A stretch of DNA of 64,000 bases from Marsupella aquatica (GCA_973895155.1 OZ316898.1:13171659-13235658); one strand, 5' to 3'. Numbered from the stretch's first letter, positions 15,313 through 56,036 are shown. The notes: generated by a model not told the origin, from the letters alone. Translations and numbers: made by a program.

Positions 15313-16202
15313 AACACGCTGACCGACCAAACGATAAGTGTGACGACCAAACGAGAAGTGTGTTTTGATTTTTGCAAAAAACAGCAAAAAATATCTTAAA
15401 TTGATATCAAAAATACAAATTCTTAGATGAATGCAAAATTGGATCCAACATCGAATTCCAAATTGAGATACTTTTTGACAAAAAATGGAAAATCATTAAA
15501 ATCTTGGATTTTAGAACAATTGATCCCATAAATATTTGTCAAACAGAAAACCCATAAAACAATGATTTTCAAGTCCTATTTCCGCGCACTAAATCAATTC
15601 GCCCGGAAAAACTTGAATAACACAAATCTCCATTTGACAAGCAAATCATTCAAACCAAAATGGGATACGCCGTATCCCGTTTCAGATTCATCCGTTGAAA
15701 ATCAAACAAAAACACGCTAAGTTGATCATTTGTGGCCTTTAGTTACCATATCGGGTAAACTAGATTTGAATGTTTACCAAAGGTAAAATGACGTACTGCA
15801 TAAACTTTACTAGTGACCACGGTCGACCAACGCAATCAGTTAAGTTAACTCAAGCAGATGGTTGGACATATTGTAGACCGTTTATTTCCCAACCGCCAAC
15901 CTCCATCTAACAAATTAGAGATATGAATACCAACAAGGATCCATGGATCCCATTTTATTTCCCAAGTCCAAAAAGAACTCAACCAAAAGTCGGGGTGAAT
16001 ACAAAATGGGATCCACGGATCCCATTTGGTATTCACCCTTCCAAATTTGCCATTGTCGAACCCCCGCGTTGCTAAATCAACGTTTGAATACCAATCGGGA
16101 TCCATGGATCCCATTGTCCGATCCAACTCAAGAAACAAACAATTTTGGAATACTCTTTTCTCTCAAAGATCAATTTTCTTCTCGTTTAAAGATTTGTACG
16201 AA

Positions 16203-16248
16203 CCAATGAATGGAAGCCACGTGGACACATTCCCCAAAACTATATAAG
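16203..16248 (+). promoter_or_regulatory. Putative transposase promoter: CCAAT, G-box (CACGTG), TATA
   Basis: Same three elements in the same order and spacing in B (35170-35215, minus strand). Confidence 0.55.
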
Positions 16249-16396
16249 AACAAGCTTGCATACGATTCTGTCTTCAGTTTTTACGACTCATTTTAGGTTC
16301 TCAAATAGTGAGTCTCTATTTTCCTAGATTGGAGTCACCGAAACGTTCCACTCCCCATAGGAATCCTTAGTCTTATAGAACCTTGATACTATCTCA

Positions 16397-18709
16397 ATGG
16401 CGTCTTCAGGTGACGAGTCTATTTATAGTTCTGATGCATCTTTGCCAGATGTTGTTCGCAAATTCATTCCATCTCGTTTGATGAAGGACCAGTTTCACAA
16501 AGAGTTTTGCCAGAGATGTCATTTTCATCAGATTCAGAGAGTTCAGGGTCTGATTTTGAGTCTGGGAGAAGTGTTGTTGGAGCTCCAACATCTTATTATG
16601 TTTCTCCAAGTAAACCACTTAAACGACGTTTGCTTGGGAGAAAGTCCACTGTCATACCCTTAGGTCAGACTAGTTCACCGCAAACCCCTCCAGATGCACC
16701 CAAACGTCGGCCTCGGTTTCTAATGCCAAGAACAATGTTGCCATGTAGGCCCGCCAAGAGATCTCCTCTAGTTTTCCTGATGTCGCGTCCTCCTGGAGTC
16801 CAGATAGCTTTGTCTAGTGTGCAATCGCAGTTTGAGCAAATAAGAAGTTCGACGGTGCTAGAAGTGCCGGCCGCACGAAGAATATCCAGAGGGATCCCTA
16901 CTCGAAGTTTGCGGAATGGAGAGCGTGCATTGCCAATTTCATCTCCTTTGCTACCAAATTCCATTAGTGGAATACCAAGTGGGATCCCACTTGGTATTCC
17001 CTCCTGGAATTTTACTAAATGGCGAGCCAGAATTGCAAATTGGGCGACCTTCGCCTACTGATTTGGTGGGAGGAATGCAAAATGGGATCCATGGATCCCA
17101 CTTGGTATCCCCTCCTGGAATTTTACCAAATGGTGAGCCCAAAATGCGAAGCGGACAACCATTGCCTGCTGATTTGGGGAGAGGAATGCGGAAGGGGATC
17201 CGTGGATCCCACTTGGTATCCCCTCCTGGAATTTTACCAAATGTTGAGCCCGAATTGCGAAGCAGTCAAACTTTGTTAGTCGCTTTGGGTGGAGGAATGA
17301 GACAGGGGATCCGTGGATCCTACTTTGTTTTACACAATGGAAAATTGTCAAGCGCTGCCATAGAACCACAAGTGGGGCAGCTCTCACTTCAAAGTCCAAG
17401 TGGACAAATACAAGTTGGGATCCACAGATCCCATTTCGTGTTCCCATCGGTGATTTCGCCTAGTGGTCAATCAAACGTCAACTTTGGGCTTCGAAGCCCT
17501 TTGGCTTGAATGCAGTGTGAGGTTGCTGGATCTTTGGTAGGACGACCACTTCAAAAGGGAGGAAGGAGATCAAGTGTCACAAATGCTACAGGTGTCCATC
17601 AAATTCCTCACAGATTGTTGCGAAGTGCGTTGCCACAAACTTGCCCAGAAAATTCAAGGCTAGAAGGAAAATTGAAGGTTGTTCAGAGACTATTCAATGG
17701 TCAGGATGATCCGTCTAGTCGAGAGACACCAAGACAAGGAGTACATTCTCAAAGACAAGTGGGGAATACTCCTGTAGAAGCAAGGAATATCGGTAGAAGA
17801 TTTCAGAGAAGAAATCTTTGGGTACCAATTTCTTTTCCAGAAGAATCTGAAGAAGAATCGGAGGTACCAGCCGATGCCGTAGAGGATGCCATAGGGACTG
17901 TTGAAATCTCAAATATTGTTAAAGAGATCCTTGGTCGCGAGAGTGCTCACGAATCAGTCTTAGAAAATGTAGAGAGTGAAAGTAATACTGGAGAAGATCA
18001 AGATACTTTTGTTTTAAGTTCAATGAGTCCCATGGAAAGTAGTGGAGGAGTGAATTCTCCCGACACAATACAGGATAGAGTAGAGGTGAGAAGACCAAGC
18101 AAAAAAATTAGAGACCAGATGATTCGAAAAGATAGGCTTATCAATACAAACTTGAAAAAATGAAAAATTAAAGATATTTTTAAGTATTCCTGTTGTGACA
18201 AGTTTTGCTTGAGGTCTTTAGGTCTAGAAGAATGTTGGAAACAACGTAAGTATTATTTTGGTCTCTCACACTCACAAAAAAACATTCTTTTGCGAGGATG
18301 TATTATGAGTAATTATAATACTTCCCGTGGATATAGTGTGAATGGACAAACTATTTGTAGAGGAGGTTTCAAGAAACCATATTCCATAGGGAATAATAGG
18401 TTGGCTACAATCCATGCAAACATGTTCACCAGGATTGAACGAGATACATTCTGTAAGGAAGACTCGCCTTCATTTCTCAACTTGGTGGAATGGTTGAAAG
18501 ATTTCTTTCAAAAAAACATGGATAGTCTTCCCCATAAAGAAATTCATCACTTGCCAGACAATTGGACAAAGCAAGAGATTCATGAAATTTTTCTCGCCGA
18601 AACAATCTTGCGGGAAGAGCAATATGTTACATATTCTTATTTCTTGCGCGTTTGGAAGAAGAAGTTTTCAAATGTTCGGATTCCCAAAAGGAGTCATTTT
18701 TCCACTTGT
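16397..18709 (+). pseudogene. Element A transposase, 5' part (interrupted by B)
   Basis: MASSGDESIYS start, 37-aa repeats, CCDKFCL...FSTC; homologous to B 35017-32866. Confidence 0.85.
17070..17445. repeat. Palindrome array type II (GGGATCC-N2-GGATCCC), 111-bp period, inside A transposase coding region
   Basis: Cores at 17084, 17195, 17306, 17417; equivalents in B at 34163, 34274, 34385. Confidence 0.9.
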
Positions 18710-19204
18710 AACACGGTGACGGACCAAACGAGAAGTGTGACCACACTTCTCGTTTCACCCGCGGTGAAAAAAGTTTCTAAGGCAAAAAAGTCTTGGATAC
18801 GGAATTAGTGTTCCCACTAAAAACTAGTTTTTCGAATTGAAAAAATGGGAAAAATTGACACGAATACGAAGATGGGATACGGCGTATCCCATTTCGGATC
18901 CAACCGCGGAATTCCCAAAAAACAAACGCAGTAAAAGTGCCGATATTGGTTTACCCGACAAGAATATTCCAAAACGATTCTTCTCAACGGTAACATTAAC
19001 CGACTTCGATGCAACTGTAGTCAAATACTAACCACGGTCAGTGAGAAAACTATAAATAGGAGATCACCTCTTGAGAATTTTACGCTCATTTTTTCTCGCT
19101 CTGTATACTCTTACTCTCGACGAATGCACACCGTCTATACAAACTCGTATTCCCCAAAAATCAGTTTTGACGAATAGGTGAGAATCTTCCTAAAAATGGC
19201 GAGG

Positions 19205-19430
19205 ACGAGTCCCAAATGGGATACGGCGTATCCCGTTTGGGATTCAACCCTCAAATTTCAAGTTTTCGTTTCACATTAGCTAAAAAAGGAGGTTGGATGC
19301 GAAGTGGGATACGAGGTATCCCATGTCGCATCCAACCTCCGAATATGAAGTAGCGTAGGTCTACTCTCAAATATCAAAACGTCAATGTTGAATGCGAAAT
19401 GGGATACGGCGTATCCCGTTTGGGATTCAC
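19205..19430. repeat. Palindrome array type I (GGGATAC-N3-GTATCCC) x3
   Basis: Cores at 19218, 19306, 19401. Confidence 0.9.
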
Positions 19431-19888
19431 TGACTCTTCAAATGTCCAGTTTTGATTGCCCATGTGGTATTTATGTAGAGTTTATTTGAATGATGGGAAA
19501 AACCTTATGGATTACTGATTGTTTCGCAGGCGAAGTTCAACTGAACTGTACGCACTGAAGCTCTTGCTGCCTTTCAGTGACCGACACCCACTCAAGCTTA
19601 AGCTTTCCTTGAAAAACGAAGTTTTCTCTTATGAGTCTAATGGCGGTTCAGAATCAAAACCTTGAGAAACGTGCTCATCGATTGTATAAGCGATTAGTTG
19701 CACTCAAAGTTCTTTGTCCTGGATTAGGCGCGCTATGGACCGGAGGCGTGGATCCACATGATAGTTTGAATCCACTCCTGTGACGCCGCCGGTACGGCGG
19801 TTAATGAGTGATTCGGTCTAACTGCGCTCGGCACGCGCGTTAGGAGTGTCTTAGACCGCTATTATTAGCATAACGATAGTATTTAGGT

Positions 19889-21005
19889 TATCGTGATACG
19901 GGCCTTGCATGAAGAAGAAGCTGGAGGCCATTTCGCGGCGGTCACGACAGCCCGAAAGATTCTGGACTCGGGGTATTGGTGGCCGACGTTGCATCGGGAT
20001 GTACAGCGCTTCATTAAGGGCTGTGACCTGTGTCAGCGGGCTGGGGCCCCGAGACGGGCTCATCATCACCCGCTCACATCTGTGCTCCCATTGGCACCAT
20101 TCAAAAAATGGGGAATTGATTATATCGGGCCGTTTACTCCCGTTACCCGAAGGCAAAGATGCAGGTACATCCTACTAGCTATTGATTACTCCACCAAGTG
20201 GGTCGAAGTGCGGGCTACGGTAAAGGACGATGCCGCAACCAGTGCCAGATTCTTATACAAACAGATTTTCACCCGATTCGGCCCGCCCTTAGAATTGGTA
20301 AGCGACCGTGGAACCCACTTCCTCAATGACACCGTAGCCGAGCTTACGGAGCGTTACCTAGTCAAGCACCGCAAGACTATCCCGTATCATCCTAAAGCCA
20401 ATGGGATGGCGGAGAGAGCAAATGGTATCATTGGGAAGATCCTCAACAAAACTGTAGCTGCGCACAAAACGGATTGGGATGATAAGTTGTACGCAGCGGT
20501 GTACTCGTATAATCTCGCTTACAAAACTACTACGAGTCACAGCCCGTACTTTCTCGTGTTTGGCCAACATTCGTTAGTGCCCGTCGAGTTTGAAGTACAC
20601 ACTCCATGAGTCAGCATTCGGGATCGCTTACCTGAATCTGAAAGTTCGTCAGACCAAGCTTATCAGATTGAAGCCTTGGAAGAAGCACGGCTACTAGCAA
20701 CTCGACACGCCGTGAAGAAACAGGCAACTTTGAAGAAGCAGCACGACAAAGGACTACGGAGGGTCGACGTCGTGGCAGGCGATCTAGTCCTTCTGTACGA
20801 TAGTAGGTACATGCAGTTTCCAGGGAAGCTTCATACCCGGTGGTTAGGGCCCTTCCTTGTCAATCAGATCTACCGTAACGGATCTTTGGAGCTTGCGACG
20901 TATGCCAGCGATTTACTCCCCACGCGAATCAGCTACGATTGTGTAAAAAAGTACCACCATCAAGATGACGACGCCGAGAGTGATGTTCGCGAGGATGCTT
21001 CATAA
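19889..21005 (+). pseudogene. Gypsy integrase fragment (HHCC, rve core, GPY/F region)
   Basis: HEEEAGGHF...CDLCQ; WGIDYIGP; SDRGTHF; YHPKANGMAER; WLGPF. Confidence 0.95.
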
Positions 21006-21020
21006 TTAAGCAGGGAGCTA

Positions 21021-24000
21021 TGTGACGCCGCCGGTATGGCGGTTAATGAGTGATTCGTTCTAACTGTGCTCGGCATGTGCGTTAGGAGTGTCTTAGACCG
21101 CTATTATTAGCATAACGACAGTATTTAGGTAATCATTATGGGTAGGATATCATTAGGCAATAAGGGGGAATTCAGGTTCGGACTGGCGGCTGGTCGCTAT
21201 TCGCACACCCGGGTTACAAGCGTGGAGGGGCCCCTCCCTCGGGTCCGTATAACGAACTTAAGGAAGCGGCCACTGACATGCGCTGACTCAGACCGGCGGA
21301 GTGGCCGGCACACCACAAGCATGAGCGGTTCAGCCTATGGGCGTCAAGGAGACGTCGGGGGATCGACAAGCCCTCAAGGTATAAAAGGGGAGCCAACCCT
21401 TTGTAGTGCACCAGTCCATCAGTCCACGCGCCAGCTTCGACCCCAACTCTCTCGTTCGCTCTAAGTCGCCACTACTATCTCCTTTGAATGTCGCACACGA
21501 TCCTCTCCAGCTCGGCCATTCGATTCTGGACGCAGTTCCTATCTACCGGAAGGCACTTGGCCGACTCATTGAAACACGCCAACCCGCGCCGATACGAAAT
21601 CGAACGCGAGTATGAGAGAGCCATCCGCCTAGCAGGACGACACCACTACATCCTTAACTTTGACTACCCGTCTCAGAGCAAGCTTTAGCGACCTGCAGAG
21701 GTATCCGGGTACTTCTTCAACGGAGACAAATATATCGGGTTTTGGGAAGCATTGCTTCGGCTTCCGAACGAGGTCTTCAATATCCCGGGTACGATCGACT
21801 TGCAGCGACATCACTTCGACCACATCCCTGCTCAGGTTCGGGCTATCATCAACAGCGAGTCTAGCACCACCCGTTGGACAAGGTCGTCTGCACTCGCTTC
21901 GGAGAACTTCTACCAGCACCTACAGAGCTTCATAGGAACTCGGCCAGCAACCAACATGACCAACTCAGTCGTACCCGTACCCGTACCCGTACAACCTCAG
22001 GCTCAGCTTCAGCTTCAGCCTCAGCCGCAGCCTAGCCAAACCCCACCACCGATCGCCCAGCCAGCACAAGTACGCTCCGTCATCAACGCTGTGGATCTTA
22101 GTGATGACGACGAGGCTACCCTACCCTTGACCAGGCGGCCCAGAGGAACAAGCGCTCAGGGGGCCGACACTATATCGTCCCCACCCCCTGCTCTGACCCC
22201 AGGAGCGGCCCCGGCAGACAACATGGTGACCATGGCCGACCCGGGCCCGTTACTAACGGCAGTAGCACTACCCAGGCCCGATCGGGAGGATGGGGAGGTG
22301 TCACCTTCCCCGAGCCAGTCACGGGGGAAGAAGAGGAAGGAATCCGACACTGCATTCGGGTTACCGTTGGCCACGGTAGCCGTGGCCAAGGTGACGATGC
22401 ACCGCATGGGGGAAAACGTTCACAAAAACATCCTCCATCCCAAGCATGCGGTGTACCTGAAGACTCAGGGATTCAAGCACCTCACCTCCCTCCCCTGGAA
22501 CACTTGAAGGTACTACGGGGAGGACATGACGGAGTTTAGCAGGAATTATGACGACGCGCGTCAACATACTCGGCTGCGGGGAAGGAGTATGTCCCTCACG
22601 GAAGAACGGCTTAGGATGATCTTCGGGTTACCCGAAGGTGACAATCAAGTCGAATCACGGGCTCACGGGGGCAAGGGAGCCAAGTACCAATCTTCAAGTT
22701 TTCCCTCAGAGGGAGCAGTGGACAACAGGTTCGTGATGAAGACCTGCCTCATCCCCGAGATAGCTGAGCGACTGGAGTTCCAGAGGTTCGCCCTCCACAT
22801 GATGGAACCCTGGGGGGAGATCTCCGCCGCCCAGGTTATCCAGGTCGAGAACTATCGACCTAGGAGGTGGGCGTTGTACTTCGCTAAGAAATTCCATGAA
22901 GAGATGGAGCGGCGAAGGAAGACGCTGTACATTGGCGGGAAGGCATATTTCGCTAGCCACATTGAGATCATTCTTGAGTGGTACGCCCGGTTTGATCGAC
23001 GAACCCTTCCCCGTGTCAACGTTACAAAGCTGGTCCCAGCTAGGTGGGTTTTTCCGGCCTTGGAGAGACGGCCCCAACCCGAGGCCCGAAGTCCAGCGGA
23101 CACGCCAGCTTCACCCACCCCACCTCCACAAGTAGCTGTAGTCATAACCGAGGAGGTACTGGATGGGTCGGGTGTCGAAACCGTTGATGCGACCCAACAG
23201 GCCTAAGTACAGAAGTCGGTACGGCGGAGGCCTTACCCGAGCCCGGTTCTCCCAAAGACCCACCGGTGGCTATTCTGGAGAACCGGACATTGCTACAAGA
23301 GGACGCTCCAGCCCCTTCCAACGTTACGTCCCCAGGGCTGGACGTCACTGCCCCGACCCCCGCGCGTGTTGACGTCTGCCCGTGCCCAACTCCGAACAGG
23401 CACAACCTGGACCACCCGAAACTCTTCGTACCGGGTACATTTCTGAACGGGCTTCTGGGAGATTTCTCTCATCAGATTGCCCGGGATACCGGGGAGTTCA
23501 TGGCCCGGAAGGTAGCCTGTTCTTCAATTAGGAGTTGGTTGCCGCAGTAAAGGCAGGTCGGGCCCAGTCAGAGGCCCTTCAAAGGATAGAGCGGTACCGA
23601 GTGGAGTCCGTGTACCTAAAGAACGAAGTTGCAGCTCAAGAGGCTGAGCTTTGGCAACTACGACCCAAGGTTGCAGCCGCCGATGAGTTGTTAGCAAAGG
23701 CGCACGCTCTTACCGCCCTAGCCGAACAGGCCAAAGCTGGGAACGAGGCCGAGATTACACGACTCCGGAACCAGATTGACAGTTTGAAGAATCAAACTGT
23801 CACCTGGCAGAAAGACCTGGAGGAGGCCGAGGAACGGGCCCAATGGGACACGGTGGAGATAGCCACGCTGCAGGCCGAGGTGGCGCGGCTCCAAACCGAG
23901 GCCGAGAAGCAGGACCAGCTGGCGGGTAAACTGACAAGTGACGCCCAGCAGTTGGAGGAGGCTTGTCAGGAGGCAGCAGAGGAGACGGACGCGGCGAGGC

Positions 24001-25016
24001 GAGAGAATGAATCTCTGCTGGACCAGGTCTAGCTCCTCAAGGCGGACAGTGACAGGCTTCAAAGGCAGCGGGATGGCCGCTCCCATTCAGGCGGCTCTGG
24101 CAAGCGTGCCAGGAATTAGCGGCGGAGTAGGAATAGATTAGGATTAGGACTAGCTTAGTCAGGCTCTTGGGACAGGCACCTGCCTTCGGTACAGCATTGC
24201 TGCCATGCTGTCCAGCCTGCGTAGATTAGGATCTTCTAATAAGACACAGCCATTTCCGGCCTGACTGTCAGCTTAGTTAAGACCTTAGTCAGTGAATCTT
24301 CGGCGAGAGGACACCCCGTCCCTCGGCCCTTAGTATTTAGTGCACCCCTCGGTAGAGGTAAGGGGGGGTTTTTAGTTGCAGAGTTGGGCGTCCGTGGTAT
24401 GTGCGGGGAGTCCCGACCTCTGGGAATGAAAGAGTACCAAGGGGAGGGGGTAGGACTAAGCTCGCCGAGCGAGTGCAGAGCCGGGCTCCGTTGTAGTGTG
24501 CACCCTCGGCCTTGAACTTGTTCATTCCGGGGCTGTCGGGTCAACTAAGTGTACGCATATGTTCCCTTTGTAGTAAAATTCTTTCCCATCATTTTCCTTC
24601 GTGTAAATCAAGATTGTATGCATGTGCGCGTGTATGTGTGTGGGTTTCTCGTATATGGGTGGCAGCGCCAGGCCGAACGCACTACCCGAGACGTGCACAG
24701 GGTGCAGCCTACGGGTAAGTGATTGCGAGCACAGGTTTAGGACATGTATCATCGAATCCGGATCGAAGGCAGACAGCACGAAGGCTTAGAAGCCCTTAAG
24801 CCGGGGTCGATCCTGCTATCGACTAAGGTACGTTCCGGCGGCGAAACACAAACCATACCTAGGAGGTGTCCGTATTTAGCAGTATGCGCACTGAGCGCTA
24901 GTTTACGAGAATAAGGTGCATTATGTGCTTCCCTTCCTGCCCGAACCCTCAGATTTACGAGGGATGTGCTCGTCTAAGCTGAAGTCTGAGTTAAGGCCGC
25001 AGCCGATGACGTGACA
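21021..25016 (+). repeat. 3' LTR of D (~4.0 kb, GC-rich)
   Basis: Starts with the same 110 bp as the 5' end, follows AAGCAGGGAGCTA, ends in CA before TSD ACTCC; TATAAAAGGGG at ~21380. Confidence 0.75.
21488..24141 (+). pseudogene. Long degenerate ORF inside the LTR of D (Pro/Gln-rich region, Athila/Tat extra-ORF-like domain, coiled coil)
   Basis: In-frame pieces 21488-21688, 21752-22507 and 22526-23206 are separated by single stops, followed by frameshifted 23266-24032. MTEFSRNY...LRGRSMSLTEERLRMIFGLP resembles 'plant transposon protein' domains. Confidence 0.6.
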
Positions 25017-26104
25017 ACTCCGAATAGAGTTTTGTGAAAAAAATGAGGATGGAGTTCCGATTTGGTCGAGGATATGTTTGAGTGGTTGTCTGCACTCTGT
25101 TAATTCTTCTTGTAACTATTGTCGTGATGCCCAAAACAAATATCATCGATTGGCATATTTTTGTTGTCGAATTTGGAATGAAGATTCTTGGATTAACTTA
25201 TCGCGTTGAATTTTCTTGATTAGTATGTAAGTGTTTAGGTGAACGTTCTTGGGTCAAACATTTTGTGAATATATTTTTATTTTGATCAAAGAAATAAAAT
25301 CAGTTTTTCCATCACTGTTTTGTAGGTTGCTGAGAAAGAGCTCACCATCTCATTTATTACTCTAGGTATCCACTCTTATTTTGAAATGGCAGTCACTGAG
25401 AACCCTGTCTTTACAAGGTTAGCGATGTCATTCGATAAAGAGAAGAAACAAATTCAACAAAAAAGTGGCCAAAGGGAATCCGGATGGAAAACCCCTTCAG
25501 AATGTTCATATTGAAGCTTTTGTTAGGATGGAAACACCGAATCTTCCTCCAATCGATTTCTTAGGTTTATTTTCAAGGTCTGACCTAAATTGATTTCAAG
25601 AAGACTGGCACAATCTTGAGAAAGATGAGCAAGCGAGGCTCTTCGAAATGTATGGGGAAGCTTCTAGTCTGGTTTGGAGCCATCTTGAATGGGCTCTTTG
25701 TAAAGACTCTTTTTAAGAATATCAACTTAGTTTTTTTTGTGGCACAATTCCGAATGAATAAAGAGTTACCCGATTCGCTATGCGTAAAATCTATTTGGTT
25801 GAATACAAGGACTTGGGGATATGCCTTATCTCTAGTCCCATCAAGAGAAAAAAATATACATAGACATCCGGACTCCAACCCTACGCTTTTGGATACACAT
25901 TATCGCCTGTGGATACGAAGGTGATAAAGTATAAATAGGAGTGTCTGGTCAGAAAATTACTCTCATTTCTTTTTCTTCTCAACTTTGTTTACCTCCGCGT
26001 TTTTCTCGGGCCGCAACATCTCTATAGCTTTTTGTATTTGCTCGAATCAAAACCAAAAAATAGGTAAAACTTGAAGAAACTCTCCCCTCCTCGTTTGGTT
26101 AATT

Positions 26105-26405: not shown

Positions 26406-26501
26406 CCTCTTTTCCGTTCTTTGCATCAGACTTGGCAATTGTTGATGTTGGATGCCAAGTGGTTTGGTCTGGTTCTAAGTGTATCAATCTTTTTCAGGAT
26501 C

Positions 26502-31139: not shown

Positions 31140-31150
31140 GGACATCAATC

Positions 31151-42423: not shown

Positions 42424-42499
42424 CCTGCGTAGAACAAACCACCTGTTAGAATTTCAAGCCTAATATGGTCCAATTAGGCAACAAGTCCATAATCCAATG

Positions 42500-45470: not shown

Positions 45471-46006
45471 GCTTATTTGGTAAATTTCTCTCCATCAAGT
45501 TCTATTGGATTCAAGACGCCATTTGAAATGAGGTACGGGTGTCCAGCAGATTACTCACATCTAAGGATTTTTGGATGTGATGCTTATGTGCTTACACCTT
45601 CCCAGCTTCGATCCAAGTTGGAGTCCAAGTCAAAGAAGTGCATTTTCCTTGGCTATCAAAAAGGTGTGAAGGGTTATAGGTTATGAGATCCAATAACCTG
45701 TAAGCTATATGTCAGTAGAGATGTGTCCTTTAATGAATCCATATCATCAAAGGAGGGGGAGAATTCTCAGGACTCCCATACTGACAAGGGGAAATCTCCC
45801 ATCCCGGACCGGGTTGAGGGGGAGATTAGTCATGATGATTTTTATGACAAGAGAGATGGAGAAGCTCCGGGCATGGAGCTAGTTCTTGTGATGGAACAAG
45901 AGGAGTAAATTGTTGTTGGGGTACCTCAAATTCAGCCAGCAGTAGCAGCAGATCAGCCTGAATCATCTACTAGAAGAACTTTCAGTCGTTCTATTAGAGC
46001 TCTTAC
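45471..46006 (+). pseudogene. Copia integrase C-terminal region between elements A and C
   Basis: AYLVNFSPSSSIGFKTPFEM...HLRIFGCDAY...KCIFLGY continues the frame broken at 15312. Confidence 0.9.
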
Positions 46007-46714
46007 ATCACTATTTTCATTAAAACTGTACTTTTAAAAGTCCAAAATATGAACCCTAAAGTTGTTTTTTTTGGGCCAAATTTCTTTTAAATCATTCCCA
46101 AATTTTATTTTATTTTAGCCCAAATATGCACTTTTGAATGCCCAAATTTTTGTTTTTTTCACCCAAATATTTAATAATAACTTAAATCATATATTCTAAT
46201 TAATTTATAAATTAAAATAAATTTGATTCAGTCCAAAAATCAGAGGCCAATACCACTCAAACCATAGATTAAAAATATCTATGATGATAAATCAAGGGTC
46301 ATAATGAGATTGATCCACAATATAATTAATAAATTGTCCAGTCCAGTGAGAGAGCCTCACACTAAGCATATTCTAATTGTTTACTTTATCCTACATGTTC
46401 CAAACATATCCTTTGACATAATATGAATGCACAATTCAGGGTAGGCACTAGAGCAACCCTATCTCCTAATGATCAAGACAAAACTCATTTGAACAAGAAA
46501 GTCTGCTTCCTGATCTATCATAGCGGATGTCACGGTTGCAAGTATCTCTCGCATGATGGTTCTTAAACTTATTGGTGAGATCCCTAGTTCTTAGAACTTT
46601 CCAAATAAAATGCCTTCTATTTTGTCTATGAGGACCAGAATAGTTGTCTCCAAGTATAGCATTTGCAATTTCTTCGATCTCATCCGTGGTCCACATTTCT
46701 AGTGGTGGGTAATG

Positions 46715-47515
46715 CTACACCTCCTCCTTTTCGTCCCAAGGAATCTCTTCAGGAGTCACATCCAAGATGGTTCCAAACTCCTTATGGATACAACAACAAT
46801 CTCCCCACTTCACCTCCAAAAGAGCATAGATGGCAACATGATCCTCCTTGCTTGTTAATAAATTGAACATAGACCACTTTGGATTGTTGATAGTGATATA
46901 ATGTTGAACACAGTAGGCCTTTCTCAATTTGCAAAGATACGGCCATAATATCTCGGGCAAAAAAGTGTCATTCAAAGCTGTGTGAGTAAATGGATTTGGA
47001 AACAATCCATTCAAGTCATAATTCAAAAATGCCTTCAATGGAGAATCATCAATAAGAACTGTATTAGAAGCATCATATTTTTCTGGAAAACGGTCCCAAA
47101 TGGTTTGCAGATTCTTCAAAAGTAAGTTGGCCTTCCCGTCTGTTATATCTGGCCTTTGGATGCAACTATCAAAGGTATCTTCTTGAGTAAAGACAAACTT
47201 GAACTTCTGTCGCTCCTCCTCAGTGAAAATCATCTCCATTAAGTCCATTGTTTTTGGCCTCCTCGCACAGGTCCAAATTGTGACGTCAAAAGCCATGAAA
47301 GCTGCATATAGCAATTCATGGAGGTAGGGGCGCTCCACATACATGAAATTAAACCCTCCACGTCTCCCCCAGTGCACACCACGTAAACTTGTCTGATTTC
47401 GCCATGGTCCTGAGCTTATGGTCTTAATGCAATCCCAACAAATCTTGTTAAGATCAAGAACCAAGAGCTTTCGCCGGATCGAAGAGTGTAGTATTGGAGT
47501 GAAGTCTGGAAACAT
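46715..47515 (-). CDS. Element C FCP1/SCP (NIF)-like HAD phosphatase domain
   Basis: KLLVLDLN; ERPYLHELL; VTIWTCA; LKNLQTIW; NTVLIDDSPLKA. Confidence 0.8.
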   Translation of the reverse strand: MFPDFTPILHSSIRRKLLVLDLNKICWDCIKTISSGPWRNQTSLRGVHWGRRGGFNFMYVERPYLHELLYAAFMAFDVTIWTCARRPKTMDLMEMIFTEEERQKFKFVFTQEDTFDSCIQRPDITDGKANLLLKNLQTIWDRFPEKYDASNTVLIDDSPLKAFLNYDLNGLFPNPFTHTALNDTFLPEILWPYLCKLRKAYCVQHYITINNPKWSMFNLLTSKEDHVAIYALLEVKWGDCCCIHKEFGTILDVTPEEIPWDEKEEV

Positions 47516-47918
47516 TAAAATAAGCCCTTAGTCAATGTGACTCAAAGTTTAAACAATTACTACCGAGGAAAAATCTCAAAATTTGAAATCAAACAAACTT
47601 TGTTATAACATTTGAAGGAGAGAGGAACGACCCTGGGGCGACCCTCCTAGAAAAACAATTATATTCAAAATTTGCTATTTTTTAGATCCAAGGTATACCT
47701 GGGTCAAACCCTTCCTCCACAGCAACGCTTTCCGAGGGAATGCCATTAAAATCATTTGAGGAAGGAGATTTTACGATGCAACTTTGGTCTGTAAAAAAGT
47801 ATATTATTACAAAATAAAGCTTAGATTGTCATTAAAATACCAAGAACCAAAGAAAAGGCTAATAATTTCCGATGTTAAAATGCCCAAATTCATCTATCGT
47901 TTGATCACCTAGAACACT

Positions 47919-50900
47919 CTATATCTCAGAGTTGATGCCACCGGGAAGTTGCTCTTCAAAGGATGGGGGTGCAAAAATTGGGCTCAATCTCAAGTTCATT
48001 TTTTTGTAATCTGATTTTTCCATTATCTTTGGACCTTCGTCTAGTGATTCTATCATTCCAACCTTTGGTCCATTTCTCCATATGAAATGAGTTGCACGAC
48101 GGACTGTTTTCATATATCTAGTCCTGCCTATCTCGGATCCAGAATTTTGTGAAAATGATAATACTACAAGGCTTCCTGAAGAAGCACTTGTAAAAACCAA
48201 TTTACTCCCTGATGAGCAATATAGAGGAGACAGGGGAGGAGTTGAAGCACCTGCCTTCTCTTCTTCATGTGCTACGGTCTCAGGCACTTGGCGATCATCC
48301 TCCTTTGCAAGTGCAATGTCTGGCATTTCTTCAAATTCTACTCCTCCAATATTGCCTAGATCACCTGCGGTTGCCTTCCATTGTGCGTCCAATGTGGACG
48401 ATGTAAGATCTGGGTCCGATTGGTGCATCCAATTCTCTACACCAGCAAAGGGATTTTTTGGTGGGTCGCCCTCAGGTCGACCCACAACATCTGTCAACCC
48501 CACACCAAAGTAGGGAGTACCTACCACTTGTGTTCCACGGTCATCCAAATTTCTGGTGACCCTGTCGTCTGTCGTGACCCAATTCTCCTTCCTCAATCTC
48601 ATCTTCACCCTGCTCTACGCCTTCTTTGGCGCCAACACGCTCGAAAACCACATCGCAGGATCTGCCAAATTTGGAACCACCCATCCCATGACTCGTTATG
48701 GAAGGAACCTTCTCGAAGAGAACCCTTCCATATGCTTGAGTGAAATCATATTCGTCCTCAGTGTCTGAATACGCAAAGCATTCTCTGAAACACAACAAGG
48801 ACACCTTCATAACCTGTCCTCCCGAGAAAAAGTCAAGGATAGTTTCCCCTTCAGTTAAAAAAAATTCAATAATACTCTGCAGTATACATTTTGGCTTAGC
48901 GTGAATATTCACAAAGCCACCTCTACTTCCCACCATCTCAAACATGGGAGCCTTTTGCAAGAAATCTCCAATGTGAAATGTCGCAGTTGACTCGGCCTCT
49001 GTCTCCTTACTTGTCTTACTCTTATTCTTATCTCGCTTCTCCATCTTGTCTCCCACTTGGAAATTAGGGTCTATCGCCAAATTGTAAGAAAATTGGCAAT
49101 TAAATCCAGGCCTGAACACTTGCTTCCAATCAAATTTCTCCTCAGTGGTGATTCCTGCAAAGATTATCTCCTCCATACCACAATTGAAAAGTAAGCCCTC
49201 TGGAACTGGTGTATCACTCCGTCGATAGCTCCCGTAATCAACGTGGATGTCCATTCCCTTTTCATGCTACAATTTCCTAAGGGCACTCAAAATGTTTGCA
49301 GCAAGTGGCCCCGGATGCACAGTCATGACAACAACAATTGTTGGATTTCTTGGAAGATCCACAATGTATTGCAGTAATGCAATAATTTCAGAATCAGTCC
49401 AAACATGTTGTCGGAGCCCCTACTGAAGTCAACAATGGCAAGAGGACACAAAGGCGAAGGCTCTTGTAGCATCTCCGGCCTGGTCGTCTTCATCAAATTA
49501 TCACTAAAAAATGTCAAGAAAGGCTCCATGCGGGAACGACCAATCCCACCAAATTCTTTACAATACAACCCATCTAGTCTAACCATCAGACTTTGCGCGA
49601 AACTCTCCTTGACCACGTTCTTCTTCAACAAATTGTTGAGGTAAACCTCACCCGTTGCTCTCCTCAACTTTGTCATCTCAAGCTCAGATTTCAAGGAAGG
49701 CAACAACGTCACTAGAGACTCCCAAGATGTGCCAACAGGAAACTTCTCACGATACATTTCCACAAAATAGCCAGTAATGATAGTTCTCAGTTTGGACATT
49801 ATCTTGATTGTAAGTGCCAAGTCTCTCATTGCGACAAGCTCTGATTTGTTGGTGATATCCTTCTTCATCAAGGCACGCTCCTCTTGAACGTCCTTCAAGA
49901 TCTCAATTATTTGTTCACTACTAATCTCTCCTTCAAAGCATCGAAAGGTATCGGGAACAATCGATTTTGGGGGTCTTGGCCCTCCATACCCACCAGCGCC
50001 ATCTTGGAGCTTCTCACTCAACCATTCTCCACACACATTCCGCCATAATTCAAAGAGCTCATCCTCGGCAAAAAGTAACCAATAAATGCTCTTCAAGCTT
50101 GACTTCCCCATTGTGACCTTTGCCAGGGAAAACCAATAAATTCTGCATATCCAATGGACTTGACATTAGTTTCAGGGTACAATGCATATGGTAGAAAGTT
50201 TATATCTAGATGTTTGAAACGGGCTAGGCCGCTTTGCCCTAAGGGCGAGGCAAACTTCTGCATCCAACCGCAATTGACAGAAATGGAACTCAAGCAATAT
50301 TCTTAGAGAGACTAGTCCAGGTTGCCTCACCCTCAGGGCAAGGCAAGCATTTGCTTTAATATTCTAACCAAGGAAAACAAGACAAGGTAGCCTCGCCCTA
50401 AGGGCGAGGCAAACCTCTACCCCAATCTTTAATCAAAGGGAATCAAGAATAGATTGCCTTGCTCAAAAATGTACCTGATAGTTTTTCCTGTCTGTATTTT
50501 GATTGGTCTCAATCCCTGGACGCGGCGGTTTCCCGCACTCCTCAAATTGCCTTCTTGCATAAACAATAGTCTCTAAAAAACAAGACTTAAATTGCAATAT
50601 TATTCACAGCGTTCGATAAACTTGAATGCTCAACCAAAATTGTCTTCGGAGTGAGGTCAGATAGGATCCTTTCTTTCCTATACTTTAGTTTGTTGGCTAG
50701 ATCTGTCAACTTGGCATCAGTGTCGGCCCACCCTTGGATCCATTGGGCAGCTCTTGCAGAATGCTGGCCACTGATGGCAAGGAATTGGATCTCCTGCTTC
50801 TTCACACCAATCAAAAACTCTTTCCTATCTTGAGGTGTGTTGTCATAATGAAGCAACTGTTGAGTGCTCTCATGATACGGAATCAAATCAGCAACTTGTG

Positions 50901-51967
50901 GTTCCTGTCCAGGGTTTTTCATCATAGACTTGGATATCTCCATTGCATGCGAATGATTGAACATTCGATATACAAAAACAGATGGCAGAATAATACTTTT
51001 GACAAGAATATCAAAAATTTCGCTGATGCCAAAAGTATAATATTGCTCAATATTACGCAAAACTTCTTGGCCTTTGAGCACATCATCTTCTTTGGGTCCT
51101 TCTGTTGGACACCTATCATCCTCTGGATGCAAGACAAAGTTTGATGTCAACGCTCGCATTGGTTTTGATCTTGCAACCTTTGCCTTCTTTGTCTGCTTTT
51201 TCTTTGGACCCTCATCGTCATCCTTTTTTGAAGCCATCTTCTTGCAGCGTGAAGTCCTAGATTGTTTCTCTTCTTGCACAACTGGCTCTCAAAGCTTCCG
51301 TTTCTTCTCTGTCTTTGATTGCGCGCTTCTTTCCATTGTCTTCTTTCTCTCTTTTGCCTTATATATGCTTTGCTTCTTTTTTCTTCATCTCTGAAATCCA
51401 CGTCCGGCACGCGGCCTCTTGAAACTCTGGACAAAAAATGAAACTCTTGTCGATTGCCTGCTCATATGAGAAATGTGCCTTCTCAATCATCCTTTGAACT
51501 CTCCAAGTAGACGGAGGGTCCACACTATCTGGATTGTCATGCATGTGTTTCTTTACATATAGAAATCCGAACACCAGGTCAACTCCACTTATTTGAGAAC
51601 GAGTCTTCTCAAACATCTGATCAATTGTTACCCCATCCGGGAAGAATCCCATATCAGCTACGCTTATCTCCAATCGAGCCATCCACTCAACATTAAGTAA
51701 AGTTGAGTAGAGTTTTATTGGCACAAGAAGTCTCATCCACTGGGATTTCTCACTGGAAATAATTGTTGCATTACGGTTGTTGTCTGTGTTCACAAGGATG
51801 ACAGGACCTAGAGTAACAATTGTCTTGCGGTCATTCAATGATTGACTTGTGAGGCCCCTGAAACAAATCAAGAGACTGCCTTCCACCGACACCCCAACTT
51901 CTAGTGCCCATCTAAATCCTAGAGTATCTTGGCCAGGGAAAACAAAGTCCTTGATATCCTCGTCCAT
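47919..51967 (-). pseudogene. Element C ParB-like + methyltransferase-like gene, fragmented
   Basis: FLAISGQHSARAA (50587-51279); LAIVDF (motif IV remnant); HAKPKCILQSIIEFFLTEGETILDFFSGG (motif X/I); acidic C-terminal part. Same order as in A/B. Confidence 0.7.
50231..50410. repeat. Element C palindromes GCCTCGCCCT-N-AGGGCGAGGC x3
   Basis: At 50231-50251, 50322-50346 and 50390-50410, in the non-coding gap of the ParB-MTase gene. Confidence 0.85.
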
Positions 51968-52023
51968 AATATTTAACTCTGGCTTCTCAAGATTTTTTCC
52001 TGATAAAAAACATTGAAAACAAA

Positions 52024-52989
52024 ATGGTCAACATCATATTTTTAACATTGAATATGGAAAACTTTGAAGGTGCCTCGCCCTTGGGGCCCCAGGATACTAT
52101 ACAGAACATTTGTCTGGGGGATAATCGAATTGGAGTATTGATCAAAAAGTGCTTTGAGGGATCGCGTCAACTTCCATTTCCTTCACTAAAATTTTCTACA
52201 TTGGCTGAGGTAGTTGACTCCTGCGTGATTTGGGATTGTGCATTGGCATACTTGGGGTCATCAACTCTTCGCCGAAGAATCAATGTCGATGATTTCTCTT
52301 TGGCTAGAGATGCTGGAAATGATAAATCCAAATCTGACGCGAGGGTTGAAGAGGAGGTGTTCAAGGAAGGAGATGAAGTTCAGATGTTCATTTTTGATCA
52401 GTTGGTTGCAAATGGAGTCATTTTCAAGACAAATCCGATGGATATTTGTCATACTGAAAGACTAGGTGTTGGTCGTATCAGTATACGAATATCTGATATT
52501 GTTAAGGGAAATCAAAAATTGCCATACTCGCACCTTGGAGCTGATACAATAGAAGAGGCCTTGCATACCTGGGTCATGTGGGATGTTGCACATGTTTCTA
52601 GAAAAGGCACTCTACAAGATTCTGGCGTGTCTGGTAGCGCAAACATATTCAATGATCTTCCATTAAAAGATTTTACACTACGTTCCAACTGGATGGCAGA
52701 GGAGGTTGATTTGTATGACGCTTCTCGTTGTTGGAAGGTTGCAACAGGTGTTATCACTGTCTCATTTGAAACAGGTGCCACTGATGATGAGCTTCTTGGT
52801 GCAGATCATGTGGGTGTTGCTGTTGTGACTATCAATGATCCTGAATTATTTCCAAATATCCGTGTTGGTACCCCCGGCTTGGTGAGGAGGGATACCATGG
52901 AATGTCAAGTGACAAAAAAACAAGTCATATCTTTAATCTCTTTGGGTGTAGAGAGGAGCAAGTCAAGAGAAAGGGATTTTTTGTTCTAA
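52024..52989 (+). CDS. Element C ORF with ~3 repeats of a Tnp1/En-Spm-like (DUF8039-type) beta domain; probable transposase N-terminus
   Basis: Repeated pattern VA.G...LG...I.I.......LP......T+.E......+WD. Confidence 0.5.
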   Translation: MVNIIFLTLNMENFEGASPLGPQDTIQNICLGDNRIGVLIKKCFEGSRQLPFPSLKFSTLAEVVDSCVIWDCALAYLGSSTLRRRINVDDFSLARDAGNDKSKSDARVEEEVFKEGDEVQMFIFDQLVANGVIFKTNPMDICHTERLGVGRISIRISDIVKGNQKLPYSHLGADTIEEALHTWVMWDVAHVSRKGTLQDSGVSGSANIFNDLPLKDFTLRSNWMAEEVDLYDASRCWKVATGVITVSFETGATDDELLGADHVGVAVVTINDPELFPNIRVGTPGLVRRDTMECQVTKKQVISLISLGVERSKSRERDFLF

Positions 52990-55422
52990 AGGGACGTGTG
53001 GTTTGTAAAGATGCATTTATTAAAATGCATGGGTTCAGTACAACAAAGTATTATGACTACAAAAATCAATACGAAGCCGGTTGCACAATTGGTTCCATGG
53101 AAATCAGGGACAACGGAAGACACGATCAAGCACTTTGCACACTCGCGCCTTGTTGGAGTCCATTTTAATCCAAGATGGGGAACCAATGCCACATCTTCCC
53201 TATGGTGGGTCCAACGGCACCGACACTATTGAATATTGGCTCCCATCTTGTTTTACTAAGAAAGAGATTTTCCAAGAGGTGTTTACCAAGATGGAATTAG
53301 ATGGGTTTGCTAAGGTTACTGAAGTTACTATGTACAACATCTGGAAAAACTCATTTGATAATTTTGACTTTCACAAGGGAAGTGCATTTGCCAAGTGCAC
53401 ATTTTGCACTGAGTTCAAAGATCAATTGATGTGGGAGAAGAGAAAAAAAGAGCGTGCAAAGATTGAAGAGAAAAGAGTGCGACATCTTTGTGAACAAATA
53501 TCAAGAAGATATGTTTACTATGCTCATAGGGTTCTTGCAAAGAAGGATCCTCAAAACTATCTTTGCATTATTCACAATAAGATGGATCAAGCCAAGACTT
53601 GGATTCCTAGGTTGGTCCCCACTTCAAAATCCCTCTCTGGTAGTGGTCAGCCTCTGCCTATTGCTCTTACTGGGATGTTAACCCATGGAAGAGATCCTGA
53701 AGTGTATGCACATTTCAGTTTGACTAAACTTTGGCCTGGAGATGCAGACTTTACTGTAACATCTTTGGCCAAATGCCTTGAGTTCGAGATTTGGAAGATT
53801 ACACAGGAAACAAAACTGGAGACCTTCTTGAAGGATTGAATTGGAATGCAACTAGGCAAGCAACTAGGCCAATATTTCAGTCCCTTCTAGACTTTGAAGC
53901 ATTTTTGGTCGGTTACTTGGAACCCAAAAATGTTTCAATTGTTCGATTTCAAGGCATTGAAGATGGTCAGGAGACTCAAAAATCAAGCACAGTGGATGTT
54001 GGTTCTAGGGATGATCTTGAGACTACTAGGGGCTCTTTCAAGCCCTTACCAAGGCACCTAACGTTGCAGATGGACAATTCAGGGAAAGATAACAAAAATC
54101 AGTATGTGATGACATTTTGCACTGAGCTTGTTAGCATGGGGGTGTTTGAAACTGTGCAAATGTCATTCCTCATGGTTGGCCACACCCATGAAGATGTGGA
54201 TGCATTATTTTCTCAAGTATCCAAACAGGTCAGATACAAAGAGGTTGCTACCCTCTTGGGGTTGATGGCTGACGTTTGGGAGTGTGAAAGCATTCATCAT
54301 GTACCACGATTGATTCAAGAGGTTGCATCTTACAAGGAGTATTTGAAGACTTTCCAGGTGAAAGAGATAGAAGGTCACTCAAAACCAATAGCATTTCTTT
54401 TCTCCATGAGGGATAATGTGCCAGTGTATCAATATAAAGCACATGTCAAGCAACCTTGGCTTCCGGCAATGGGGAGGTCCATTTGGAGAACTGATCCCAT
54501 CACAAATGCGCTCATTTTACCGGAAGGCCAACCATTTGCAAAACCTATATCTGGGGATGTACAAAAGAAGGCCGGAGAAATCATCCCATTCCTTAATCGC
54601 TATATTGATTTCTTGAAGAAAAGTTGTAAGGATGAGACCTCTACAGCATATCGAGAGAGATTTCCTCTGGTCAAATATTGGGAGAATCTTGTGCAAGCAC
54701 TGTCCGAGAAACTTACAATAGAAGGGGAGGGGGAAAGACAATTGCCATTGACAACTGATTTTTGGCCAAAGACTAACCATGGCACAGGTTACAAGATGAT
54801 TTTGGGGACATCTCAACCGTCAAGTGAACCTTCTCAAAATCCAGAGATGATGGACCTTCAAAATGAGTACATGGAAGAGATGGAAGATCAAGCTGCACCC
54901 TTTGTTGGTGCACGACAAGAGCGAGAACCTGCACGTTGGATTCCTCTACAAGATATTCAAGAAGGTCACTTTGTATTTTTACATCCAGAGGATGAATGGG
55001 AACAGGAAAATGGCAAAAGGCGTTTCTGGTTGGTTCGAGCTTTGGGTGGCATGGATCCAAACCATGAGGTTCCCTCAACAGAATTTCAACATATTGAAGG
55101 GTCTTTGTCAAAGTCTGTTCAAAGCATTCCTAAGAGGAATGCTCCTATGTTCCAAGTACAATGGTGGAGGCCTAAATATGGTAAGCATGATGCAAAGGAT
55201 GATGTTCGATATGAATGTTGCTTTCAGACCACTAAGACTTGGGAGCTGGATCCTGGGTTTGACAATGTTGCTCAAAGTTGGCAGTTTGCAAATTCTACAA
55301 TGTATGGGTTTAAGTCAGGTGCTAAAGAACAAAATATTATGGATAGAGGTTTGACAATTCCCAAGAATGTTTTGAAAACTCTCAAATTTACATGGAAGGT
55401 ATTGATGAGTAGATTGATATAG
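52985..55422 (+). pseudogene. Element C transposase (Sola-like DDD), frameshifted
   Basis: FAKCTFCTEF; CIIHNKMDQAK; LQMDNSGKDNKNQ; FLMVGHTHEDVDALFS. Confidence 0.88.
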
Positions 55423-56036
55423 CAGGTCACAAGTCTCCACTCAAATGACTTGTGATTAGAGGGTTGAGTTGATTTCCATGAGTTTGTCTAAAGTGAGAGA
55501 ACAAGTCTGACAATCAAATTAATATTCTATGATCTCTCAAAGTTATTGAATTATGGACTTTAAGTTATTGAATGAACTTTCTTATAATTATTATTTTATT
55601 TGTCTTAGTACAATTTAATTCTAGAAAATGATGCCATTGATATCATTCCTTCTAATAGGTTGTATATCATTCTAGTTAACTTTGTCTAGACAGTATAGTC
55701 ATTCTAAGACAAACTTGCTTACTTAGTTAGATATCTTACCCAAGCTAAATGTCTTTAATATAGATGCTATCCAAGCTTATATGTTATTACTAGATTCTAT
55801 CTATTTTCCAGCCAAATGAACACTTTTGTCACCTAAATGTTTTTTAATATCATCCAATTTAATATTTAATTTTCCCAAAATTTCATTTTTTATCCCCAAA
55901 TTTATATTTAATGATGCTTGAATTTTCATTTTTCATCTTCCAAATTTACAATTTTCATACCTAAAACTATGTTTTTAAATCTCCAAATTTCCCTATATCC
56001 TTTATAATTTCAGTTTTAATGAATATAGTGATTTAC

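Follow-up and report, generated by a model that had tools for sequence, protein, structure and literature searches.

Within the DNA transposons, the Sola superfamily, including Sola1, was reportedly set out by Bao and colleagues in 2009. The closest described relative of the elements considered here is Sola1-1_Ec32 of Ectocarpus, a 21.5-kb transposon with a ParB-like/methyltransferase accessory gene on the opposite strand, for which self-binding and self-marking were proposed (Genome Biology 2025, PMC12477816). Its curated transposase (PMC12477816 supplement) carries the blocks MDGANQ, VDNTVAENKN, and VGHTHIQID; the element has a 4-bp target site duplication (TSD) and AACCG termini, and its best blastp match is Repbase Sola1-1_PPa (PMC12477816). 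In red algae, Plavaka elements (CMC/EnSpm) carry the accessory genes PAG2 and PAG3 (Petroll et al. 2025, bioRxiv 10.1101/2025.02.11.637652), and the same Bostrychia preprint ties ParB-bearing accessory proteins to adjacent inverted-repeat arrays. We analyzed a stretch of 64,000 nucleotides from Marsupella aquatica (GCA_973895155.1, OZ316898.1:13171659-13235658; hereafter the window, with positions counted from its first letter). It contains three large cut-and-paste elements, designated A, B, and C, each with terminal inverted repeats (TIRs) and a perfect 4-bp TSD on both sides (Table 1). Judging from sequence comparisons and a predicted fold, we consider it fairly probable that all three are decayed copies, belonging to two Sola1 lineages that diverged deeply, with a ParB-like/methylase gene as self-binding and self-marking cargo.

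Architecture and superfamily of the elements

In a BLAST comparison of the window against itself, 15320-18709 pairs in inverted orientation with 36133-32924, and 18778-32927 pairs with 45418-36162. The sole pattern that explains these two blocks is an insertion of B inside A, in the opposite orientation; the insertion point is the start of an intron in A's transposase gene. A and B share 76-83% identity in coding DNA. The TIR of A is short and imperfect (AACAYRSTGACC, ~9/12 bases), whereas the TIRs of B and C match at 32/35 and 21/22 bases, respectively (C: ATCACTATWTTCATTAAAACTG). B measures ~12.2 kb once a 5.6-kb Ty3-type insert (~19430-25017) is subtracted, and A has just ~390 bp at the corresponding place. 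A preliminary description of the window had given sizes of ~12.7 kb (A), ~12.2 kb (B), and 10.0 kb (C), and our reading of the junctions agrees with these sizes and with the ends and TSDs reported there.

Pfam DUF7869 matched the B ORF (open reading frame) at 31151-32731 on the minus strand (E = 2e-46) and the C ORF at 53791-55422 (E = 8e-38). All three elements have the motif series D..DN..NKN..GHTH..D, arranged in D-G-x-x-Q, DN-x4-NKN, and GHTH-x3-D blocks; in A and B, these blocks read IDGMDQ, LDNTTRENKN, and VGHTHDQID, and the corresponding C blocks are listed in Table 1. Because the same three catalytic blocks occur in the same order in Sola1-1_Ec32, together with a 4-bp TSD and similar termini, we assign A, B, and C to Sola1 on sequence grounds, with a tie to Repbase via Sola1-1_Ec32 only. 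The Sola-type DDD transposase with 4-bp TSDs (TACA, TTGT, and TTAC, all perfect) that had been proposed for this locus is thereby supported. The C transposase shares 25-38% identity with those of A and B. All named homologues of the transposase are annotated as “DUF7869 domain-containing” (Riccia sorocarpa, Ceratopteris, Adiantum, Chara, and Branchiostoma), and the nearest of them, from Riccia, ferns, and Chara, have 34-40% identity; the name DUF7869 was not found in the literature searched.

Homologues of ~900 aa align to the left-arm portion of the A transposase at 18188-18748. In B, a ~100-nt AT-rich segment at ~32735-32855 is full of stops and missing from the homologue, and we therefore read it as a short intron; based on sequence, the B transposase may be intact after its removal. 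In C, ~260 nt (53782-54046) are uncovered by homologues, which points to an intron or insertion there.

In each element, the ParB-like/methyltransferase gene lies opposite to the transposase, as the preliminary description had stated, with a much more divergent copy in C. The pairing recurs on three independent metagenome contigs (L001, 8.9 kb; L002, 9.9 kb; L004, 8.8 kb), in which a DUF7869 gene adjoins an opposite-strand N6_N4_Mtase gene of 789-995 aa. In A and B, the ParB-methylase-Ulp1 unit and the transposase are convergent (tail to tail), whereas in C and the three contigs the ParB-methylase and transposase genes diverge, head to head. The L001 proteins are nearest to those of Chara braunii. 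Termini starting with AACAC are found in A, in B, in the L002 TIRs, and in the innermost gapless TIR block of L001. The TSDs of these metagenome relatives are not clean (CTCT vs CTAT in L002), and the ends of L001 lie beyond its contig. Contig L002 holds a full element at 630-8026, with an extra copy of the left TIR inside it at 7592 (7592-8026), and a 1.7-kb internally deleted derivative at 8089-9782 with the same TIRs, AACACTGATTTCG; this derivative hints that short non-autonomous copies arise within the family.

The accessory gene of elements A and B

Using an exhaustive HMMER search, we identified 378 proteins homologous to the accessory gene at E ≤ 0.001. Among the full-length homologues, which are colinear with B 27545-29977 and A 41787-39023, are two Chara braunii proteins (GBG86584 and GBG66685), one from Ginkgo (Gb_37443), and intronless ORFs from metagenomes (789-995 aa). 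The gap in the homologue alignment falls on a palindrome array (B 28506-28918, A 40119-40430), and we read this segment as an intron of the A and B genes. Exons were examined one by one; the ~1000-aa accessory product is putative as a single protein. The Chara protein GBG86584 (1825 aa) contains tandem ParB-like/methylase units at residues ~104-600 and 1037-1710, probably two neighboring element copies fused by gene prediction.

The methylase exon of B is intact, with motif IV (IADIPYG) located 160 aa ahead of motif I (VVDLCAGSG). Pfam N6_N4_Mtase matched B at E = 4.6e-6, its 27.2 bits being barely above the curated cut-off of 26.7, and homologues matched the full model at up to 7.6e-18. Against the PDB, a profile of 13 full-length members matched DpnA (5e-17), M.MboIIA (1e-14), CcrM (5e-14), and M.RsrI (1e-10), and it matched the rotifer N4CMT at 5e-6 and M.PvuII at 0.004. 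The first four of these are beta-class enzymes that methylate adenine at N6. Across the family, motif IV follows the form D-x-P-Y-G and motif I (DLxSGSGT) is kept; motif IV reads DIPY, DFPY, DAPY, DLPY, or DVPY in streptophyte-type sequences and the canonical DPPY(G) in intronless relatives. Most of the >100 homologues in the A/B clade retain the D, P, Y, and G of motif IV as well as motif I, which binds S-adenosylmethionine. Based on these matches and on the order of motif IV before motif I, the C-terminal part of the accessory protein is assigned as a beta-class DNA amino-methyltransferase domain. Its specificity in A and B is most likely adenine N6, given the Asp at the first position of motif IV and the ranking of PDB matches.

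For the region ahead of the methylase, AlphaFold produced a model of the intact L001 homologue (P0133 residues 120-300; 20-row alignment) with a predicted local distance difference test (pLDDT) score of 82.6. In Foldseek, ranks 1-26 were occupied by Caulobacter ParB, Noc, Spo0J, KorB, Myxococcus ParB, and sulfiredoxin (E 0.03-0.8, probability up to 0.99), in alignments of ~175 columns that span the ParB N-domain and the subsequent helical DNA-binding part. The VIA search, which is independent of Foldseek, placed PadC, sulfiredoxin, KorB, pNOB8 ParB-N, SerK, Spo0J, and human sulfiredoxin at ranks 1-7 (Z 6.9-5.0), with helical noise at Z 4.4 and below, and 12/30 language-model neighbors in the ESM Atlas belonged to the ParB_N family set. 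There was also one weak match to DUF6551 (E = 0.019). For B's own 156-aa ParB-like ORF (16-row alignment), the model reached a pLDDT of 62 and Foldseek returned noise only. With modest scores, the L001 model thus identifies the N-terminal part of the accessory protein as a predicted fold of the ParB/sulfiredoxin type with helices after it, an arrangement shared with ParB, Noc, and KorB.

Downstream of the accessory gene, A and B carry a gene whose B copy matched Pfam Peptidase_C48 at E = 9.4e-12. In both elements, it contains MHW, LDS, and QQPNxxDCG, such that the His, Asp, and Cys of the catalytic triad and the oxyanion Gln are kept; the catalytic Cys of B lies within QQPNNSDCG in exon 2. The match and the complete triad support the Ulp1 previously placed at this position. 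The label “de-modifying enzyme” is not supported for the gene in this position, as Ulp1 is a SUMO-type protease and its counterpart in C, a NIF-like protein with DLN for DxD, acts on proteins if at all.

The divergent cargo of element C

In C, the ORF at 48541-49254 matches the family profile near motif X and motif I (HMM E = 1.6e-4; hhalign E = 2e-4; Pfam E = 0.005), and it contains IHAKP and, in the motif I region, ILDFFSGGQ. The Pfam N6_N4_Mtase score for C (17.2 bits, E = 0.005) is below the cut-off. A candidate motif IV, IVDFSRG, in the ORF at 49323-50111 was placed by eye, with DFSR at the position of the tetrapeptide; hhalign with the family profile left this exon unaligned. Given the same order, the same strand, and the palindromes between the two parts, we accept the C gene as a homologue of the A/B accessory gene, with active-site motifs that appear degenerate.

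Pfam NIF matched C at 46715-47515 (E = 3.7e-15), in line with the FCP1-like gene that the preliminary description had placed after the ParB-like/methylase-like gene; in place of the catalytic DxDx(T/V), the ORF has LDLNKI. Two NIF homologues (65% and 46% identity) reach this motif and have LDLNKI and LDLNGV, respectively, and a downstream DDSP block is invariant. Together, these features suggest a conserved protein, one that has probably lost its phosphatase chemistry. In the C lineage, where the methylase-like and phosphatase-like sites are both degenerate, the accessory protein would probably be a binder only.

These substitutions bear on an alternative in which the accessory protein of land plants is a DNA-binding pseudo-methyltransferase, serving as a reader or adaptor that acts with Ulp1 or the pseudo-phosphatase on chromatin proteins. 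Such a role would accommodate the DFSRG and FFSGGQ that C has for DPPY and FxGxG, the DLN for DxD that its NIF partner shares with both homologues reaching the motif, and the lack of the first proline of motif IV in A and B. However, retention of the motif IV D, P, Y, and G and of motif I in most of the >100 A/B-clade homologues, under strong purifying selection, is the pattern of an active pocket, and the intronless relatives have the canonical DPPYG. We regard a pseudo-methyltransferase as a possible but somewhat unlikely account of the family.

Selection and state of the copies

We estimated the ratio of nonsynonymous to synonymous divergence (dN/dS) between A and B by the pairwise Nei-Gojobori method. 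In the transposase, dN/dS was 0.12 for the catalytic exon (dS 0.80) and 0.19 and 0.27 for the upstream exons. In the accessory gene, it was 0.11 for the methylase exon (dS 1.37), 0.06 for the ParB part (dS saturated), and 0.22 for the N-terminal region; Ulp1 gave 0.31 over 86 codons. By this measure, purifying selection acts on the accessory gene no less strongly than on the transposase, and the low values indicate that the cargo was kept by selection during the divergence of A and B, with decay after insertion only. The transposase and the methylase also group the loci alike (B with L001, and L002 with L004), which fits co-descent, albeit with few taxa.

An origin of the extra genes as chance passengers, acquired by Pack-type capture and without a role for the element, would be hard to reconcile with dN/dS values that stay at 0.06-0.31 for every cargo exon (dS 0.6 to >2), and the same gene pair occurs in the Chara-like and other metagenome contigs and in Ectocarpus. 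Ulp1 domains are frequent passengers of plant MULE (Mutator-like) and CACTA elements, and every copy in the window is broken, both of which speak for passengers; we nevertheless consider this origin highly improbable. The earlier view of the ParB-methylase gene as old, conserved cargo instead of a Pack-type capture is upheld by its dN/dS of 0.06-0.22, the three independent contigs, and the congruent grouping.

Between A and B, dS is ~2x higher in the ParB-methylase gene (1.4 to >2; 26421-30115 vs 38936-42075) than in the transposase (0.73-0.82; 31151-34099 vs 16400-18709 + 36301-37926). Module exchange between lineages and a different mutation regime are possible explanations for this gap.

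Two lesions interrupt the accessory gene of B, a frameshift near 27940-27990 and a stop at 28206-28208; neither is an intron, since the A sequence runs through both positions without a break. The A transposase has a stop at 37183-37185 and is also split by B, and C has breaks or possible introns in all three genes. A was killed by the insertion of B and by stop codons, and the copies in the window are relics. The elements had been described as autonomous, which does not fit copies of which A and B are broken and C is probably broken.

Palindrome arrays and a proposed mechanism

A type-1 palindrome, GGGATACNNNGTATCCC, has 27 matches (0.16 expected), all within A and B, and 12/13 matches to a type-2 palindrome, GGGATCCNNGGATCCC, also lie within A and B. 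Type 1 is located under both ends, upstream of the accessory gene (4-5 copies at 90-bp spacing), and in the accessory-gene intron. Type 2 is located solely between the terminus and the transposase gene, upstream of the transposase part covered by homologues. The 111-bp GGATCC repeats also lie upstream of this part, and a coding role, or the description “written into coding sequence,” is therefore not supported. When aligned, the 27 type-1 copies form a composite dyad of ~41 bp, TGAAT-N7-GGGATAC-N3-GTATCCC-N7-ATTCA. Its columns are conserved, and pairing within copies is not above the prediction from column frequencies, one position excepted, which argues for a sequence-specific protein site; a reading of the palindromes as hairpins or structure only was ruled out for lack of any such surplus.

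The other lineages have sites of their own. The 21-bp palindrome of C (GCCTCGCCCTNAGGGCGAGGC) lies in the stretch that separates ParB-like from methylase-like ORFs, which corresponds in position to the intron array of A and B. L002 has ~15 copies of GTGCGAAAATATTTTACAAGC, L004 has ~7 copies of TTGAAAATATTTTCAA, and in L001 a GACCGATAGCG-type repeat occurs ~7 times, in both orientations, with one copy making a dyad. The palindromes reported previously for A, B, and C are thus lineage-specific, with other palindromes in L001, L002, and L004. Sites private to a lineage are as expected from a co-evolving binder and site, the binder being either the ParB-like part or the transposase.

KorB, Noc, and ParB dimers bind palindromes of 13-16 bp. 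The ParB-like part of the accessory protein may bind the element's own composite palindromes as a dimer. Binding would bring the methylase to element DNA, which would be marked, most likely at adenine N6 as suggested by the D-x-P-Y-G motif and by DpnA, MboIIA, CcrM, and RsrI as the closest enzymes. As a guess, the purpose of the mark could be to keep the element's genes transcribed against host silencing. Alternatively, hemimethylated sites could allow the mark to couple transposition to replication, a role that Dam methylation plays in IS10 and Tn5. Taken as a whole, a scheme in which the accessory protein and private palindromes form a transposon self-recognition system that writes N6-methyladenine (6mA) to escape silencing or to time excision, with the C type, both of whose enzymes would be dead, reduced to binders, is offered tentatively, and we rate it as rather unlikely. 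If true, it would provide a first worked example, among eukaryotic transposons, of an element with its own writer and the writer's cognate sites.

The arrays might instead be subterminal sites bound by the transposase, of the kind known from hAT, CACTA, and Mutator elements, with the ParB-like/methylase protein acting independently or on host DNA. The arrays under both termini would suit this explanation, but many copies are distant from either end, being placed upstream of the accessory gene or within its intron (28531-28906, 40119-40313, 50231-50410). The confinement of type-2 palindromes to the transposase side, between terminus and transposase gene, also points to the transposase, and the two conserved blocks of the composite site could suit two proteins; against this, perfect dyads of 14-17 bp match the dimer sites of ParB, KorB, and Noc, and the same association of ParB and arrays is found in ParB-bearing Plavaka elements. 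We consider it rather doubtful that the palindromes are transposase sites of this kind.

Several observations weigh against reading the cargo as a self-binding and self-marking system. Pfam found no ParB in single ORFs, and ParB_N had no match in the 13 full-length members at E up to 5; a PDB profile search for ParB had none at E up to 10, and the ParB similarity is confined to the fold level, with modest scores (Foldseek E 0.03-0.8; Z <8). At the position of the ParB motif GERRxRA, the family has a conserved Y-x-V-x-G-G-x-H-x-x-x-A (GGNHxxxA) without the arginines, and a CTP-dependent clamp is therefore not expected. The canonical motif IV tetrapeptide, (D/N/S)-P-P-(Y/F/W), is absent from A, B, and most streptophyte homologues, which have D-[IFLAV]-P-Y; as the first proline is missing from plant-type copies (DIPY, DFPY, DAPY), activity is not assured. 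In C, the methylase-like part is recognizable around motif I only (E = 2e-4), and the alignment of its ORF 50587-51279 with the ParB-like part is weak, as MKNP and ISGQHSARA align with the family's MKxNP and VGGNHSxxA at an hhalign P of 0.0014 and a probability of 17%. A search for sequencing runs yielded six, and none of these was recorded as RNA. Finally, no copy in the window looks fully intact, and the palindromes could equally serve as sites for the transposase.

Neighboring repeats and feature coordinates

The Ty3-type insert in B has 52-59% GC and contains a 119-nt repeat in direct orientation (19779 and 21021); apart from its integrase, the ORFs of 19430-25017 had no Pfam match beyond coiled-coil noise. 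A and C both sit within one Ty1/copia retrotransposon (12400-15312, 45471-46002, 56037-58100), in which gag (13860-14195) is followed by a pre-integrase domain (14417-14806), an integrase core that starts at 15091 and is interrupted by A, and a reverse transcriptase (56230-56853). A possible pair of long terminal repeats (LTRs) for this host element is found at 12422-12524 and 58016-58118, with 83% identity. Direct repeats at 6845-7008 and 12074-12239 (95-97% identity, 5.2 kb apart, TG start) probably represent the LTR pair of another, younger LTR retrotransposon. At 57772-57891, a 40-bp tandem repeat occurs three times and ends in the plant telomere-type unit CCCTAAA; positions 9115-9363 of L002 are similarly rich in CCCTAA.

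Table 1. Coordinates of elements, genes, and repeats in the window.
Feature	Position	Strand	Details
Element A	15313-18709 + 36166-45466	+	12,698 bp, interrupted by B; TSD TACA at 15309-15312 / 45467-45470
A left arm	15313-18709	+	Left TIR, 1 type-1 and 7 type-2 palindromes, 5' half of A transposase gene
A right arm	36166-45466	+	Transposase 3' half, Ulp1, ParB-like/methylase gene, palindrome arrays, right TIR
A transposase, 3' half	36301-37926	+	In-frame stop 37183-37185
A Ulp1	~38881 to ~37850	-	Triad motifs
A ParB-like/methylase gene	42075-38936	-	In-frame stops 41038-41040, 39287-39289
A right-arm palindrome arrays	40119-40313, 42514-42890, 44695-45322		
Element B	18710-36161	- (strand of its transposase)	17,452 bp; TSD TTGT at 18706-18709 / 36162-36165
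Ty3-type LTR retrotransposon fragment in B (outside the Sola1 family)	19430-25017	+	GC-rich; integrase at 19893-20609
B ParB-like/methyltransferase gene	26421-30115	+	N-terminal and ParB-like part 26421-28343; methylase exon 28949-30115
B accessory-gene intron	~28400-28948	+	Holds five palindromes
B Ulp1 (Peptidase_C48) gene	30195-31139	+	Exon 1 30195-30761 (His MHWSL, Asp LDSL); exon 2 ~30939-31139 (QQPNNSDCG)
B Sola1 (DUF7869) transposase	31151-34099	-	Catalytic ORF 31151-32731; upstream exon to 34099
Further B ORF	34379-34936		dN/dS 0.27
Element C	46007-56032	+ (strand of its transposase)	10,026 bp; TSD TTAC at 46003-46006 / 56033-56036
C NIF/FCP1-like gene	46466-47515	-	DLNKI for DxDxT; C-terminal 76 aa (46466-46696) beyond a break
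C ParB-like/methylase-like gene, divergent	47919-51967	-	ORFs 51359-51967, 50587-51279, 49323-50111, 48541-49254; tail 47919-48608
C palindrome GCCTCGCCCTNAGGGCGAGGC	50231-50410	.	Three copies
C Sola1 (DUF7869) transposase	53081-55422	+	MDNSGKDNKN, VGHTHEDVD

Comparison with known systems

Transposons that carry their own DNA-modifying enzyme together with its binding sites could reveal how mobile DNA manipulates host epigenetic control. The present family offers clear test material for this question: a defined site of 17-41 bp, a strongly selected fusion of a predicted ParB-fold binder with a probable adenine methylase, and naturally occurring variants whose active sites are canonical, altered, or dead. 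Through named homologues, it brings Chara and Ginkgo into a design already reported from brown, red, and green algae, and it adds two recurrent partner genes.

Fusions of a ParB-like protein with an N6_N4 methyltransferase in phages and plasmids have the same domain order, a ParB-type N-terminus followed by a beta-class methylase. The methylase domain of the family aligned, at an hhalign probability of 98.5, with a protein of an Anaerosphaera phage that bears the annotation ParB-like partition nuclease; in the comparison with the phage ParB-methylase, the methylase half alone aligned. Identity to the phage and plasmid fusions is ~25% and confined to the methylase domain, and the eukaryotic proteins are 2-3x longer. 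Unlike phage and plasmid ParB, they lack the GERRxRA CTP (cytidine triphosphate)-binding motif and are cargo of a eukaryotic transposon.

Marchantia DN4MT1 and bdelloid N4CMT are likewise prokaryotic-type beta-class amino-methyltransferases in eukaryotic genomes, and neither a ParB part nor a transposon context has been reported for them. DN4MT1 has TSPPY, in contrast to the D-x-P-Y-G of the A/B family, and the family profile favors N6-adenine enzymes over N4CMT by 8-11 orders of magnitude. The A/B methylase as the origin of DN4MT1 or N4CMT, or as derived from them, was rejected on the basis of TSPPY vs DxPY and the profile scores, and the link to these enzymes raised in the preliminary description is not supported by these comparisons, the PDB relatives being adenine-N6 enzymes.

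The Plavaka elements differ in having a transposase of another superfamily, a ParB fused to a 2-oxoglutarate (2OG) oxygenase, and an N6-adenine methylase in a separate SET-domain protein. With Sola1-1_Ec32, the elements in the window share the Sola-1 transposase blocks, the 4-bp TSD, AAC-starting termini, a length of >10 kb, and an opposite-strand accessory gene of ~1000-1100 aa with ParB-like and N4C/N6A methyltransferase domains, the accessory proteins being compared by description. Given this published design, the elements in the window are a plant variant and not a new kind of system. The novelty claimed for them earlier fails in part: the combination of Sola-1 with a ParB-methyltransferase and the idea of self-marking were already in print (PMC12477816). 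Our literature search found no paper on land-plant copies of it. In contrast to Sola1-1_Ec32, the elements in the window have a streptophyte host, introns, a third conserved gene (Ulp1, or a NIF-like gene with DLN), documented palindrome arrays, and a motif IV that reads D-x-P-Y or, in C, is degenerate. Relative to the published case, the new features are a host range in streptophytes, a conserved third gene, defined composite sites, and a series of active-site variants.

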